A stretch of DNA of 64,000 nt, from the NCBI GenBank assembly GCA_021613535.1, contig CP075497.1:3100001-3164000 (forward strand), given 5' to 3'. Below, in pieces: positions 16,211-23,061 of this stretch. The stretch comes from Adineta vaga. Its lineage: Eukaryota > Animalia > Rotifera. The notes under the pieces are model-generated. The model made no database searches and was not told the origin of the DNA. It saw only the letters and a program-made list of their open reading frames with translations. How positions within the stretch are numbered: position 1 is the first letter of the stretch; each line of letters starts with the position of its first letter. A program made the translations under genes and the position numbers.

Positions 16211-17281
16211 TCAAACTGATTCCTTCATTAATGAAATAAATGAATGTAAGCCATTTTCATTCTCAGTTTTATCCATCATTGCTTCCAAATCTGATAACCA
16301 ACTAGATGAATATTGTCGAAAATAATGTACATGTTCCGTAGCGAATGTCAGAAACCATTGATCAGGAATCATTCCTATTGAATAGGATTCCATATTTTCA
16401 CGACTGTTTGTGCAAATAATTTTTATATAAGTATCTTCAGCAGAACGTTTGGCGTCCATATATGTACATGGAGATAGTCGATAGATAATATCAATAATGT
16501 GTAATTTTTCGCATGTTGTCAATGGAGGAAAAATGATCTAGAAGATAATGAATGATCGATAGAAATATGGAAGAAAAATTGTTTACTTGTTGAGAATTTG
16601 TCTTTTGAGTTAAACTACGAGTTCGTTGATTATTTCTCGATGTATTCATGGATAAAACTGGTGCTTGTTGATGTTTTACTTCAGTAAATCGTCTTCTAAA
16701 TTCTTCTACACGCATTTTATCTTCAGTATCATTTGAAATTTTCAAAAGTTCATTTGCTGTTGACCACATCAACATTATTTGTTCACTATCACCTTCTGCT
16801 ATCATCTAAATATTGAATATCCTGTCGAATCTCTAACTGAAAAAGACTAGAATATCTTCATACAAGTACTGAATAGATGATCATATCGTTTGCATCAATC
16901 CATTTTTCTGTAAATTCTTTATCCAATAAACAAACATGATACAATTGTCGATCAACTAAAACCATAAGTGAACATTTTATTTCTACTATGAATTATCTTA
17001 CTATCAAATTTCATTACAAGACCATTAATATTGAAAACAATTGCAGGAAAATATTGAGTATCTATTTGAACGATAACAATATCACCTGTTTCAAAATGAC
17101 GAAGTATTTCTATAACAAAATGTTGTATTATTTAAAATTTCTTCGTTGAAAAATTTTCTTTTTTCAAACCTTTGTGTGATTCACTTGATAAATTATCAAT
17201 ATTTTCATCATTCATTGTATTGTTATCTATCATTACTAATGGTACAAGACTATCCAAACTAGGTCGATTATTTGTCATCAT
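16211..17281 (-). CDS. Hypothetical multi-exon protein with a degenerate PWWP/Tudor-like N-terminal domain
   Basis: Exons join via GT-AG introns: FETGDIVIVQIDTQYFPAIV...YHVCLLDKEFTEKWIDANDMIIY, followed by the helical C-terminal ORFs 16491-16805 and 16211-16522. Confidence 0.55.
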
Positions 17282-17417
17282 AATTGAAATTTAATCTGAA
17301 AAAAAGATCCTCTCTCTAACAGATTACATAGACATAGCATATAGACATGTTCAGACATTTATTCACAAAAAATATTTTCTCTTTTTCATTACAATCACAA
17401 AATCTAAATGACAATCA

Positions 17418-19841
17418 TTACATATTTGTTATCTGACTATCTTCAACTTCACGTGTTGCAGGTAAATACACTTTGAAGCAATATTTATTTATTGCAAATG
17501 AACCCTATTTCGAAATATGATAAAATAAACTTTTAATCTAATAAAAATAATTTGCTTCTTTACCGGATTGATAATTGTACAATCAGCAATAGTATCTGTT
17601 ATTGATTTGAATTTATCACAAACGACAATTAAATCTGGCAATGGATATAAATGGAGTGCATGATCGTATGACCAATAGATAGGTGTCATATAAACAGGTA
17701 ATGGTGATAGATGTGCTTGAGTAATAAGTGTATGACAAAGCTACAAAAATGAATTCTTCTTCTATTGATTGAGTGGAGAATGAAACAATATCTTACATGC
17801 ATAGGTAAATTATCTGAAGGTAATTTAATACAATAGCGACAAAGTTTTTGCAAGAGATCTTCACGAAAGACGACTATTTCTTGAGTACAATATTGAATTC
17901 GAACAGGATTTGTTGCTAAATGTAAATGACGAATACGTTTTTTCAATATATCATTAATAGATGGTGGAAGTGGTGCACTGAAATAATCAAACCATATAGT
18001 TATTTTATTTATTTTGAAATGCAAAAAAAAATGGAGCAAACCGAGGATAAATTTTCGGTGCATGACGATCTTGTGGTCCAGGTACAAAAATAAAATGAGA
18101 TCGTTCACATATATCTGGATATTTTCCAACAAGTTTACCAAAAGTTTTGAAAGCATCTATGATTTAACAACGTTACCGAACTTTGGATTTCGAATGAAGA
18201 AAAACAAAACGAACCTGACAGATCATTGACATAAAGATTAGCTGTTGGTCGAGAGAGAAAATTACCACAAAAGATAAATGCAAATGGAGGTTGATCAGCA
18301 AATCCATCGAATAATTGTTCGATACGTTCCATTACCTAGAATATATATAAATATACATTGAATGTCATCGAATGCTTTTCACTTGACCTTTTTATCATCA
18401 AGCCAAACATCCGAAAGAAAGATAAATGCATCATCAGATTTCTCTTCGATTTCTTTCAGACGAATCTTTGTTTTGGCACTTTGATCATGAGGATTTCCTG
18501 TAATATTGATTTCACCAAAATATGATCTAGAAATATTGTCCAAATTCACATAACCAGAAATATCTTTCCTTATCATCAAACCTTGTATTCTGTGCTGATT
18601 CTGGTGGTGGTAAACCAATTCCTATCGATGGATGAAAGAAACAGAGAAATGTCTAGTTGTATTTAACGAATTCTGTACCTGAAACTTTAAATATACCATC
18701 ATCAATTTGTCCTTCCACAAGAACAAAACAGTTTTCAAAATAGAATCCTGGATGAAATGTCTTCAAATAGAAAAATATTTCATAAATTCATTTCGAATAG
18801 AATAGAAAACAAACACAAGCAGTACCGCATTATCTAAATTGAGTGAAATAACACCAGTTGGATCTTGTAGATCATATTTTGCCTATTCAAATTCAATAAA
18901 TATTTCTCTATATCACAGCTGATTCTATTACCTCATGTAATTGTGATAACATGCCAAGTAAAACAACTTTTTCCGATTTTGAACCAGCAGCCAATAAATG
19001 TTCGATAGTTTTCAACTAAAACGTCAATAGAATGATCAAATATTGATATTCATCGAAGTATCACTTGATATTTTTGTCCTTTATTCGTTGATGCTGATGC
19101 TAGATTGACTTGTGAAAAGACATCATGTCTTGATGTTCTCTAATTTGAATAAGAAAATAAGATTTCATTGAAAAATATGATTTTACTTGTAATAACAAAT
19201 CATATCGTTCCCAAAATACTTCAGATCGTGTACGAGCATTTCCGAATAGATCATTATCAATTTCTTTTCTACAGTGAAATAGAGAGAACCATCATCATCA
19301 TAGGAAAGTAAACATTCGTTTTTGAAAAAAATATATACTCCATAAATTTCTTCATTGTTCGTGAATAAATAAATTTTGGTATGGAAAATGCATTCAGAAC
19401 TGTGAAAAGAGCTTCACTACTAAAATATAAAAAGCAATTCAAGACTGCTCTTGATATTTATAATGATCAAACGAACTGAGAATCATTGGAAAGTTGAGCT
19501 CTTAGTTCTTGAACAACATTTATCAAAAGTGTTTTTTCAACAGTCGACGATGTTACTATTTTAGAAATGAAATAATATTCAATTTGAAAAATGAGAAGAA
19601 AAACGACACGAACAATTTCGTTTTGTCAATAAATCAATTAATTGATCGAGCCAAGAATTTAAAGAAGCTGAAGGAACCGTTGCAGCTAATTCCACTAAGA
19701 ATTGCGATGCATCACTGAATTGAAATTTGATAATAAATCTTTTCTTTCATATTCATTTGTTGTTACTTACAATTTCAAATCCAAACCACGTAAACGAAAA
19801 GCAGCTAAGACATTTGATTTCACTGAACTATCTAACGACAT
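17418..19841 (-). CDS. POLE2: DNA polymerase epsilon subunit 2 (B subunit, Dpb2)
   Basis: VLAAFRLRGLDLK N-terminus, FIFLSDVWLDD, FIFCGNF, TNPVRIQYCTQEIVVFREDL, PIYWSYDHALHLYPLPDLIV, INPG, FKVYLPATREVEDS. Confidence 0.95.
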
Positions 19842-19853
19842 GTTCACTATTTT

Positions 19854-20273
19854 CTATCTACAAACATTCTCGACATCATGACTATCAACATTATTCATGA
19901 AATTACGCGTAATGATCAATCCGTTTACATATTCTTTCATATCAAAATCATTTCCTAATTTTCGAATTAATTGAGCATCGATTCGAATAGAATCACCACC
20001 TTGTCGAATAACTCTTCCATAAACTTGAACGAATTGATCTTTTGGTACAGCTAATGAATGTAAATCAAATGATGTGCGAAGATTGCTCAGTGAAACATGT
20101 ACAGTTGATGATGATGATGATGATGATTTTCCATTGATATTGTCATCACCAACATCATCATAGATGATAAAAGTTCGTTGCATTGAATTAATTGATTGAA
20201 TACGTGCTACAATGCAAACTACATCAACAAAAGAATCGCCGAGTTCACTAATACGAAGCCATGAAGCAGCCAT
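19854..20273 (-). CDS. Small single OB-fold protein, TEN1 (CST complex)-like; RPA3 is the alternative
   Basis: About 139 aa, intronless. Pattern ISEL..VCIVARI..FIIYD..VHVSLSNLR..FVQVYGRV..IDAQLIRKL..FDMKEY..LIITRNFM resembles the TEN1/RPA14 OB fold with its C-terminal helix. Splice-acceptor AG at 20281-20282 just upstream of the ATG. Confidence 0.6.
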   Translation of the reverse strand: MAASWLRISELGDSFVDVVCIVARIQSINSMQRTFIIYDDVGDDNINGKSSSSSSSTVHVSLSNLRTSFDLHSLAVPKDQFVQVYGRVIRQGGDSIRIDAQLIRKLGNDFDMKEYVNGLIITRNFMNNVDSHDVENVCR

Positions 20274-20883
20274 AATCAATCTAGATGAAAGTGTCAGAAT
20301 ACAATCCCATCAATCGGATGAGAAGTTCTATTCCATTTATCGAAAAAGAAAACAAATCATTAGGTCGATTTTTTATGTTTTTTTTTTATTTTCGTAATTC
20401 TTTTTGTTTGTCTCAGATCGCGTTTCTCCCTCACGGTATCAAAAGAAAATGCCCAAATATCTCGGTTCCACATCGTTCAATTCCGTCATACAAAATAAAA
20501 CAAAACAAAACAAAACAATCAAGCCAACGCCCACACAGCAAACACACAAGACGATAAAACAAGCAGAAAAAAAAACGAAGAAAAAAAAGTAAAACAAACG
20601 AAACCGCACGCACATCAACTCATCGACTATTGTCGAGATAAAAAAAATGAAAATCGATTTCTATGAGTTGTCCAAGTCTAATCTAGGATCCTCACAGAAG
20701 TCAAAAAGAAAAAGAAAACAAGAAGAAGAGAGATTTCTTTTCTCACCGAGTTGGTTGGGCAAAATATACGCATACACACAGATAAATGCTGTTAGAATTG
20801 AATAATTTTTTTTCTCTCCCTTCTTCTATTGCACTTAATTTGTTCCGAAAAAGAAAAACAACTTTTTGAAGAAAATAATTTCA

Positions 20884-23061
20884 TCATTCATCACACGATT
20901 TCTTTTCATCAAATGTTGTGATACTATCTTCAGAATTTCTTATTGTACTAGAAGCAACAACAGCATCATCATTAACTGTACTGCCATTCACAATTGTCGA
21001 TGTATCATTGAGATTATTCGGCGATAGATTATTTGAAACAGAATTATGCGATTGATCGGCATTATTATTAGTAGTAGAATTACTATCTTCATTTGATACA
21101 TTTGTTGAATCACGGCTCATTTGAATAATCGATTGAATACGCCGCTGAGCGAACTGAATAAGAAGAAAAAAGTGAGCAAAAATTAAGATGAAATTCATGA
21201 CTTTACTTGACTAGCTTGAAAAGGACCAATAATTTTAACGGGCACTTCAGTAGCTGATGTTTGCTGTGAATCTTCAGGCAATTTAATAAGTATCCCGTTG
21301 ATTGTTGTAATTGACGAACCTTCATAGTGAGGAATATTTTTCACATAGACTGAAGTTAAAAAATCAATAGAATTGCTTACATTTTGTCCACCTTTACCAA
21401 CCAAACGTCCAATTAATGATGTAGGTACATAGATTTCTGCTCTTAATCGAACTTCATCATCACCAGCATAACCTGAAAAGAAATCGATTTGCATGATGAT
21501 TCAAACCATACATGAATGTAGAACCTTCTTGTCGGATTTTATCGTATATATAATATTGACTTTTCCATTGTGCTTCTGGTGTTCCTGTTATTGTTACTTG
21601 TCGATCAACTATCTTATTTTGATCCTCATGTGGACTCTGTGGACTAATCTAAGATACAAAACAAAAAACATTCTTACTGATGACAAAAGTTTTAATTCTG
21701 AGACAATCAATTACTTTGACTGTTGCATTTGAATTTTTAATAATACTTTTAATAAAAAGACCTTTACTACCAATAATAGCTCCAATCACTGTATTTGGTA
21801 CATATAAGTGTACCGTTTCAACGACTGCTGGTGCATTTGATGATAGGTGTGTAATTGATGATGGATATTGCTGTTGTGGTGGTAGATGGGAAAGTGTTCC
21901 GTTTCCATTTAATGCGACATTTCCATAGTGATGAGATGGCATTACATGACCTGTCGGTGGGTAGGACATATAATATGGTCCTGTAGTAGGAAATATTTGT
22001 GGCTAAAAATCAAAGAAATATTCTTTCATTCTTCCATCTTATCGTTTTACAAAATTAAACTTACGTAATAAGGTTGATGATATATTGCAGTTGGATGAGG
22101 TTGCTGTTCAATATATTTGTTCGATGAACCATTACTACTACTTGTTGATGTTTGTTGTATTAATGGTGGCTGTTGTTGTTGCTGTTGTTGTGTATAATGA
22201 GTAGGTAATAGAGGTTGACCACCATTAGCAGCTGCTGCCATTACTGCTTGTTGAGCGAAATGTTGTATTAATTGCTGTTGCTGCTGTTGCTGATGATATG
22301 ATGAAGTGGGAGGATTCCATGCTCTTGCGTTATCATTTTCATATGCTGAGCATAATTTTGTATAGATTGTTTCGACTGCGCGTATTTGTTGATCAAGTTC
22401 ACCTTTAATCGTTATAGTTCTTTCTACATTATATGTATTCAATTCATTAATACTTGATACTGTAATACTATGAAAGGAGAAAGAAAAATTTCTCAAAAAC
22501 AAATGATCAAAATCTGTTTCAAACAAACTTTGTCTCTGTTTCTTTTTTTATTGTATTTATTATATTACCACCTTTACCAATAATTCGACCGATAAAATTA
22601 TTATGTGCAAGAACTTTTACAACAACATCACTAGAATATATATATAATGGCATGAAATGAAGATAAAATAGATGCGTATTATCAATTACTTTGTTTTGTT
22701 CTTATTTTTTGCATCTTCATACATGATACGAAGAACTTCACGACAAGCTTGAATACAATTTTCCTGTTGACCTCGGATAACAATCACTCGCTCTTGTGTA
22801 TTTGTTGATTCATTTTTATTCACATCAACTCTATAATTAATCATATGGAAAACATTTGTCAAACTGTGAACGAAAATACTTTGCATGTGTTGATTGTTTG
22901 ATTTGTTTTACTGTTGAACCCTGTTTACCAATTATAGCTCCAACAGAATCGCTGGGTACAAGGATTCTATTAAAAAGAAAGTCTACTTATTCATTACAAA
23001 TTGAAACAAAGAACATTTACCGAAGTGGGTAATCATATGATTGTCCGTATGTATAATCCAT
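20884..23061 (-). CDS. IGF2BP: IGF2BP/Imp-family RNA-binding protein (4 KH domains, Q-rich linker, no RRMs seen)
   Basis: DYPLRILVPSDSVGAIIGKQG (KH1), KVLAHNNFIGRIIGKGG..YNVERTITIKG (KH2), ETVHLYVPNTVIGAIIGSKG (KH3), EIYVPTSLIGRLVGKGG..VKIIGPFQASQFAQRRI (KH4). Confidence 0.9.

Follow-up and report, generated by a model that had tools for sequence, protein, structure and literature searches.

An 87-bp block absent from the Adineta vaga reference assembly and present in transcripts, between a TEN1-like gene and POLE2

Operons whose messages are resolved by spliced-leader (SL) trans-splicing have been described in nematodes, tunicates and chaetognaths, including the 'SL1-type' operons of C. elegans and the near-zero spacers of Ciona and Oikopleura (PMC12460157; PMC7986045). 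Haplotype divergence, the 'Meselson effect', has been reported for asexual mites (PMC8463897, PMC11758997). For rotifers, a literature search yielded no description of operons. The locus considered here lies in a stretch of 64,000 nucleotides of the bdelloid rotifer Adineta vaga (reference assembly GCA_021613535.1, contig CP075497.1, positions 3,100,001 to 3,164,000; hereafter the window), in which an open reading frame (ORF) for an OB-fold protein resembling TEN1, the small subunit of CST, is followed almost without spacer by POLE2, the gene for Pol epsilon subunit B. All coordinates are window positions, and all the genes discussed are on the minus strand. The OB-fold ORF ends GTC GAG AAT GTT TGT AGA TAG (stop at 19856-19854), and 12 in-frame, stop-free nucleotides (AAA ATA GTG AAC) separate it from the start of POLE2 (ATG TCG TTA GAT, with the ATG at 19841-19839). 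This sequence is exactly as described in an initial annotation of the window, which had read the gap of four sense codons as a sign that one transcription unit yields two proteins, by alternative acceptors or reinitiation, or an OB-POLE2 fusion by readthrough of the TAG. The follow-up reported here found that neither the stop codon nor the lack of a spacer in the reference matches the mRNA produced by the animal. A block of 87 bp is absent from the reference assembly and present in A. vaga transcripts, in which each of the two genes is found on contigs of its own, and the TAG of the window ORF is an accidental stop produced by loss of the block, not the normal end of the gene. The window probably (with a probability of about 0.65) holds the short allele of a conserved, operon-like TEN1-like/POLE2 pair, and the reference would lack the long allele from which the functional TEN1-like mRNA is made.

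The RNA evidence consisted of contigs from four A. vaga runs (X1, X5, X6 and X13), from four studies, aligned to positions 16900-21900. The OB-gene contigs of X1 and X6, which belong to two studies, agree with the window between about 20298 and 19865 and then diverge, reading AGGGTTCAGCCGATAATAGTGGTAACCCAA (111 letters in X6), which in the OB frame gives E G S A D N S G N P. The POLE2 contigs were found to be separate from those of the OB gene, with ends at 19832 (X1, X13) or 19854 (X5). Depth arithmetic gave zero coverage on 19833-19864 in X1, X6 and X13, and positions 19855-19864 are uncovered by any contig of the four runs, leaving the TAG and the junction unconfirmed by transcripts; the transcripts observed do not use the TAG as a stop. 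No contig in the four runs bridges the OB ORF and POLE2, or any two genes, contigs being unable to show rare precursors. The continuation was absent from the reference assembly when searched for with a 30-mer, an 18-mer, a 21-mer and the 111-nt segment of relatives, which ruled out a tail exon located elsewhere and cis- or trans-spliced from the GT at 19864. Similarly, a second gene copy as the source of the long RNA was ruled out, the TEN1-like gene being single-copy in the assembly. Two contig ends near the start of POLE2 were also set aside. The loose end of X13 at 19789, considered as an alternative 5' end of POLE2, belongs to a DEAD-box helicase mRNA from C3 with a chance match of 18 nt, and the X5 end at 19854, considered as a transcription start, is adaptor, the same 11-mer being found inverted at the other end of the contig (17388), upstream of the poly(A) signal. 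Within the OB gene, the X6 contigs carry five single-base differences from the reference (19908, 19917, 19958, 20173 and 20181), three of them on the contig with the long junction, and X6 may be another strain or a second haplotype. Additionally, a 6-letter difference between an X1 contig and the reference lies in a run of Ser codons (TCA) at 20095-20136.

The nature of the missing segment was established by comparison with related loci. A word-index search returned 21 relatives, 118-192 residues long and with proteins of A. steineri and Rotaria among them; many of the 21 end in a conserved tail, ..EN-EG-x-x-DNSGNPIRTIL; the A. vaga transcripts start to spell the same tail. In A. steineri (L005, L006) and a metagenome contig (L007), the order is KH-domain gene, OB gene, POLE2, and the OB gene is an uninterrupted ORF in which GAGAATG is followed by 87 nt (tail, stop, AAATAAATAA signal, ..ATATATTCT) and then by TTGTAG/ATATAAATACTAATC-ATG, with 62 nt from the OB stop to the POLE2 ATG. 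The block therein comprises a 16-codon tail, a stop and an AATAAA-like signal. The window counterpart reads GAGAATG-TTTGTAGATAG...ATG, without the block. In long forms from further lineages (L024, L027, L028), POLE2 lies 52-76 nt downstream, and both a poly(A)-like signal and an acceptor of the pyrimidine-AG type are present. The short form is also found in a sister lineage (L008; GATGATG-TTTGTAGATAG, with an 11-nt gap containing TAG and TGA), in L010-L012 and in the GC-richer L017/L018 (gap of 11 nt), and L009 and L016 correspond to L007 minus exactly 87 bp. L007 and L009 share 99.5% identity over 2.2 kb, and their next-nearest difference is 183 nt from the indel. In the short forms the OB stop always lies beyond the POLE2 acceptor, and the C-terminal extensions are arbitrary (VCR, VL, VVDINT, VVDINTNHVYG or 30 residues), the conserved tail being lost. 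In the window, the VCR-TAG end arises because block loss puts the acceptor and 5' untranslated region (UTR) of POLE2 in the OB frame, and the 12-nt gap is what remains of the 16-nt POLE2 5' UTR after the TAG.

At the sequence level, the short form appears to be neither peculiar to the reference nor an assembly error, because independent contigs (L008, L009, L010-L012, L016, L017/L018) lack the same block. The presence of two differences between RNA and assembly within 1.5 kb, the second being one missing base at 21291 in the upstream KH-domain gene, would be accounted for if both were assembly errors and the genome held the long form only; nevertheless, this is very unlikely, as the same junction occurs in independent contigs of at least five other lineages (short-read metagenomes, Logan assemblies) and an error would not recreate a natural allele base for base. 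The block boundaries are identical everywhere, on the left after the first G of a Glu codon and on the right where the run of T that precedes GTAG begins, and neither the ends nor the interior of the block showed microhomology, splice-like ends, repeats or notable structure (fold z-score -1.06). Slippage or hairpin-driven loss was rejected on the lack of boundary repeats and on the same z-score. The block was also rejected as an intron, since its ends are AG..CT on both strands, its boundaries are unshiftable and it is retained in RNA. A scan of metagenomes for the A. vaga long junction gave nothing relevant.

Long and short proteins were found within single clusters in look-ups at 90% identity, and the two forms co-occur in at least six lineages with near-identical flanks. 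Short P0004 and long P0005, which fall in separate clusters (1 and 2), have identical cores, as do short P0023 and long P0024 of cluster 4, which also contains short P0026 and P0027 and long P0018, P0025 and P0028, and short P0013 and long P0029 of cluster 5. The cores differ at 6 of 123 residues between short P0011 and long P0022 (cluster 3) and at 8 of 125 between short P0006 and long P0030 (cluster 6). In the tree, forms group by lineage and not by long or short state. Only the long form was recorded for the P0021 lineage (35 contig records) and for A. steineri (8). Over the shared core, the ratio of nonsynonymous to synonymous substitution rates (dN/dS) was 0.17-0.45 between two short forms, at dS up to 1.8, and 0.29-0.45 between two long forms. 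Because the short-short values resemble the long-long ones, the short ORFs are under purifying selection and not decaying.

The order TEN1-like then POLE2 was found in 13 related loci (L005-L012, L016-L018, L024, L027, L028) and is the sole adjacency conserved throughout; in the deepest-branching lineage (L024, 1323-4783), a Kelch-repeat gene stands upstream instead of the KH-domain gene. In the window, the KH-domain gene, the TEN1-like gene, POLE2 and the next gene form a chain on one strand with spacings of 12-122 nt. The leader end CTTGGTAAG (reverse complement CTTACCAAG) was found on the gene after POLE2, at the AG at 17297-17296, in X1 and X6, and the ends of the POLE2 contigs lie 12-82 nt before this acceptor. 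The assembly contains 58 copies of the leader gene GCTTATTACAACTTACCAAGAG/GT, against 0 for the reversed control, and this leader matches the published rotifer consensus (PMC3795323). The SL RNA genes are clustered (e.g., C5:9884354-9925971), often in head-to-head pairs about 157 nt apart, and variant copies exist, such as one with A for C at leader position 10. Both acceptor-like strings pointed out by the initial annotation, tgtttgtag (AG 19859-19858) and ttcatctag (AG 20282-20281), are present and conserved in up to 11 related loci; the ..ATCTAG/AT before the OB gene is kept in 11 loci, the GC-richer lineage included, and the TTTGTAG-type site 5' of POLE2 in all loci compared. An operon-like arrangement of these genes, in an organism with SL trans-splicing, is supported. 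A scan of metagenomes for an SL-POLE2 junction returned unrelated matches only.

In the favoured explanation, the TEN1-like gene of the ancestral long form would have a stop of its own after a conserved tail of 16 residues, together with an AATAAA-like signal, and would be followed 52-76 nt past the stop by the acceptor and ATG of POLE2. In the short form, with the 87-bp block gone, the ORF would enter TTTGTAG and stop by chance at the TAG in the POLE2 5' UTR (AG/ATAG), the 12-nt in-frame spacing being a by-product. The laboratory clone would carry a second, long allele supplying the stable TEN1-like mRNA, POLE2 mRNA would be produced from both alleles by trans-splicing of a 22-23 nt leader at 19858/19857, and the upstream RNA fragment of the short allele would mostly be lost. 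Several points weigh against this explanation. The long allele of the clone is suggested by RNA and not by DNA of the reference, and RNA with the short junction may exist, since contigs drop rare variants. The P0001 (3 contigs) and P0017 (4) lineages, as well as four singletons, are short only so far, and the dN/dS of the short forms suggests that the short allele may also make protein. The leader was unseen on POLE2 or on the TEN1-like gene in the contigs of the four runs, and the TEN1-like contigs of X1 and X13 extend, leaderless, 17-23 nt upstream of the acceptor-like AG (to 20298 and 20304).

Some of these points would be met by a functional bicistron on the short allele, a tentative and rather unlikely alternative in which the TEN1-like protein, ending in VCR, is made from a non-trans-spliced RNA running into POLE2, POLE2 itself is expressed through trans-splicing or reinitiation, and long and short are two working layouts of one operon. 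Since the short-form stop lies beyond the POLE2 acceptor, a complete short-form mRNA must include POLE2 sequence, and the short ORFs are intact in every lineage, with the low dN/dS given above. The lineages known only as short, P0001 and P0017, also speak for this alternative. Conversion from long alleles, however, could keep the ORFs intact; the short junction is crossed by no contig in the four A. vaga runs, and the arbitrary C-termini without the conserved tail count against a bicistron. The sole transcript-looking contig, L016, was considered as a leader-trimmed bicistronic transcript and rejected because its POLE2 introns are retained.

The other product envisaged from the short layout, an OB-POLE2 fusion protein made by readthrough of the TAG, draws on the four in-frame sense codons before the POLE2 ATG, although in-frame spacing has a one-in-three chance. 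The frame and spacing were found not to be conserved in relatives: the gaps are of 11 nt in L008 (with its TAG and TGA) and L017, the short OB ORF overruns the POLE2 ATG out of frame in L009/L010, P0003, P0010 and P0011, and the long forms interpose 52-76 nt that include a poly(A) signal. As frame and spacing vary among the short forms, the case for a conserved readthrough fusion is unsupported, and readthrough in the window is hardly credible.

The recurrence of the same indel with near-identical flanks can be read in two ways: the states may have been long kept together while conversion homogenised the flanks, or the block may have been lost repeatedly and precisely. A further explanation, in which the block is excised from body-cell DNA or lost repeatedly at a very high rate, long and short being states of one chromosome, would fit the identical boundaries in many lineages, the identical or near-identical flanks and an A. 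vaga replication gene that is short in DNA and long in RNA. It is nonetheless highly improbable, given the long-only records of A. steineri (8) and of the P0021 lineage (35) and a block without end repeats, structure or splice-like ends. Precise excision of short segments is, to our knowledge, not known in animals. A speculative and improbable reading is that the two forms are an old, obligate heterozygosity or are continually regenerated, so that the alleles of an asexual animal would divide the labour between them. TEN1-like mRNA would come from the long allele, and the short allele, lacking a terminator between the two genes, would serve only POLE2; both would have persisted through the radiation of many bdelloid lineages while conversion erased flank differences.

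The KH-domain gene upstream provided a second disagreement on the assembled haplotype. RNA of X1, X5 and X13 has an extra base after 21291, at full depth, in the last KH exon, as do all relatives. In the assembly, the last KH domain is frameshifted, reading ..VRQLQQSTG and, after the frame change, ..LIKLPEDSQQ. In two neighbouring genes, therefore, the assembled haplotype carries disruptive differences from the RNA that is expressed, and the RNA evidence would fit a heterozygous clone whose other haplotype supplies intact messages. In the 3' UTR of the same gene, X5 (organism B) presents a 12-nt CACGCACGCACA insertion after 20610. A contig of X1, X6 and X13 touches only 20329-20356 and 20564-20588, with a joint that skips 207 nt and has non-canonical TC..AG ends; it continues on either side with over 255 letters that do not match, and is probably an unrelated RNA sharing low-complexity UTR pieces.

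The identity of the two proteins was also evaluated. The gene downstream of the OB ORF is POLE2, as first proposed: one of its exons matches PF04042, the A. steineri orthologue at the same position has PF12213 (Dpoe2NT) and PF04042 (DNA_pol_E_B), and the 16-exon model (1572 nt) has no internal stop in an exon-by-exon phase check. RNA contigs confirm introns through 15 listed joints with minus-strand GT..AG ends, and seven further joints lie outside the listing; the three introns nearest the 5' end (19770-19715, 19613-19556, 19476-19420) were taken from sequence. The prediction of a TEN1/RPA3-like OB fold upstream was likewise upheld by profile matches, an AlphaFold2 model and structure searches. 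The 139-residue window ORF scored 21.2 bits against Rep_fac-A_3 (PF08661; cutoff 23.5), for which weak matches were found in 20 of the 21 family members, P0021 reaching 28.2 bits. Ten1_2 (PF15490) matched 7 of the 21 at E<0.1, the best again being P0021 (25.4 bits, where the cutoff is 27); no Ten1_2 match was obtained for the window ORF itself, and the gathering score was reached by none of the 21. The AlphaFold2 model (mean predicted local distance difference test score, pLDDT, of 77.9) presents one OB fold of five strands and a C-terminal helix at 112-132.

In the structural comparison that had been proposed for the 139-residue protein, TEN1 chains were the closest. The top Foldseek match was the TEN1 chain 8d0b_C, with a template modelling (TM) score by target of 0.81. 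The TM scores by target and VIA Z values were 0.80-0.82 and 14.4-14.9 for human TEN1, 0.76-0.79 and 13.0-13.5 for S. pombe Ten1, 0.73-0.79 and 13.1-13.4 for archaeal RPA14, which is thus close behind the TEN1 chains in VIA Z, and 0.65-0.68 and 11.3-11.5 for human RPA14, whose Z values are on a par with those of generic OB folds. With TEN1 (4joi_C, 8d0b_C, 8soj_C, 6w6w_D, 3kf6_B, 3k0x), the model shares a single OB fold plus C-terminal helix, with root-mean-square deviations of 1.6-2.0 A over 98-116 residues. Unlike TEN1, with which sequence identity is 11-19% and the Ten1_2 score below cutoff, the rotifer protein has an extra Ser/Asp-rich loop (residues 43-53), and its long forms add the conserved tail ..DNSGNPIRTIL. 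RPA3/RPA14 (PF08661; 1quq, 2pi2, 8rk2; archaeal 8aaj_C) has the same fold and the weak family-wide profile matches, whereas human RPA14 scores lower than TEN1 and the window ORF stays under the Pfam cutoff. A better RPA3 candidate lies elsewhere in the assembly, at C4:5805800-5805886 (..RINGSMIQQFSGKPVSIIGTV.., 27 bits on the RPA3 N-terminus from one exon); it is also found in L015 (1492-1602 and 1733-1936), its first exon alone is above the Pfam cutoff, and it is probably the canonical RPA3. The window protein is thus probably not the RPA3 orthologue of the genome, the canonical gene being on another chromosome. The label TEN1-like was adopted because TEN1 gave the best structural matches and the better RPA3 candidate is on C4; it denotes a modelled resemblance, closer to TEN1 than to RPA3, and not proven membership. 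A six-frame hidden Markov model (HMM) search of the assembly for STN1_2, in which a gene can match only one exon at a time, gave no match, no control genome reaching the cutoff either (one scored below it), and the HMM search for Ten1_2 was empty and uninformative.

Table 1. Features of the TEN1-like/POLE2 locus in the window.
Feature	Position	Strand	Evidence or remark
Upstream KH-domain gene, 3' UTR	20369..20886	-	TGA 20886-20884; AATAAA 20390-20385; RNA contig end 20369 (X1, X5, X6, X13); KH_1 matches
Acceptor-like pyrimidine-AG site TTTCATCTAG, 8 nt 5' of OB-gene ATG	20281..20290	-	Conserved
TEN1-like OB-fold ORF, short allele, 139 codons + TAG	19854..20273	-	ATG 20273
Junction of the missing 87-bp block in the reference	19864..19865	-	Loose ends of X1, X6 contigs at 19865; alignments with L005, L006, L007; L007 vs L009
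POLE2 acceptor-like TTTGTAG	19858..19864	-	TTTGTAGATA invariant in locus alignment; putative spliced-leader acceptor
POLE2 5' UTR, 16 nt, ATAGAAAATAGTGAAC	19842..19857	-	Bases 2-4 form the TAG that ends the short OB ORF
POLE2 coding region, 16 exons, 523 codons	17418..19841	-	Stop TAA 17420-17418
POLE2 3' UTR	17309..17417	-	AATAAA 17363-17358; RNA contig ends 17379, 17342, 17309
Next gene: spliced-leader acceptor AG 17297-17296, 14-nt 5' UTR, ATG 17281	17279..17297	-	Leader on X1, X6 contigs
One base absent from the reference, last KH-domain exon of upstream gene	21291..21292	-	RNA of X1, X5, X13; all relatives

For annotation, these results mean that the true end of the gene, with its conserved tail, is missing from the haploid reference, and that the adjacent gene is frameshifted on the same haplotype. 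The position of the TEN1-like gene directly upstream of POLE2 across bdelloids suggests co-expression of two replication/telomere factors from one operon-like unit. The presence or absence of 87 bp in at least six lineages is a simple marker, testable by polymerase chain reaction, in a group famous for long-term asexuality, and could serve to distinguish heterozygosity kept over long periods from repeated precise deletion and from exchange between lineages.

Compared with the SL-resolved operons of other phyla, the locus is similar in having same-strand genes tens of bases apart, a pyrimidine-AG acceptor 14-16 nt 5' of each ATG, the leader of the phylum on a downstream gene of the chain and a gene order conserved across species. 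It differs in that neither a polycistronic precursor nor a leader on POLE2 was observed in the RNA contigs, and in that the upstream stop of the short allele lies beyond the downstream acceptor, so that the two mature mRNAs cannot both be complete. We know of no description of an upstream stop past the downstream acceptor in nematode, tunicate or chaetognath operons. The comparison with Meselson-type haplotype divergence also brings out differences, as the flanks here show no divergence (99.5% identity) and distant lineages have the same indel, a combination that simple long-term haplotype independence does not predict. With such divergence and with the sheltered loss-of-function or structural alleles of asexual diploids, the locus shares one disrupted haplotype, carrying the KH frameshift and the truncated TEN1-like gene, together with intact transcripts.

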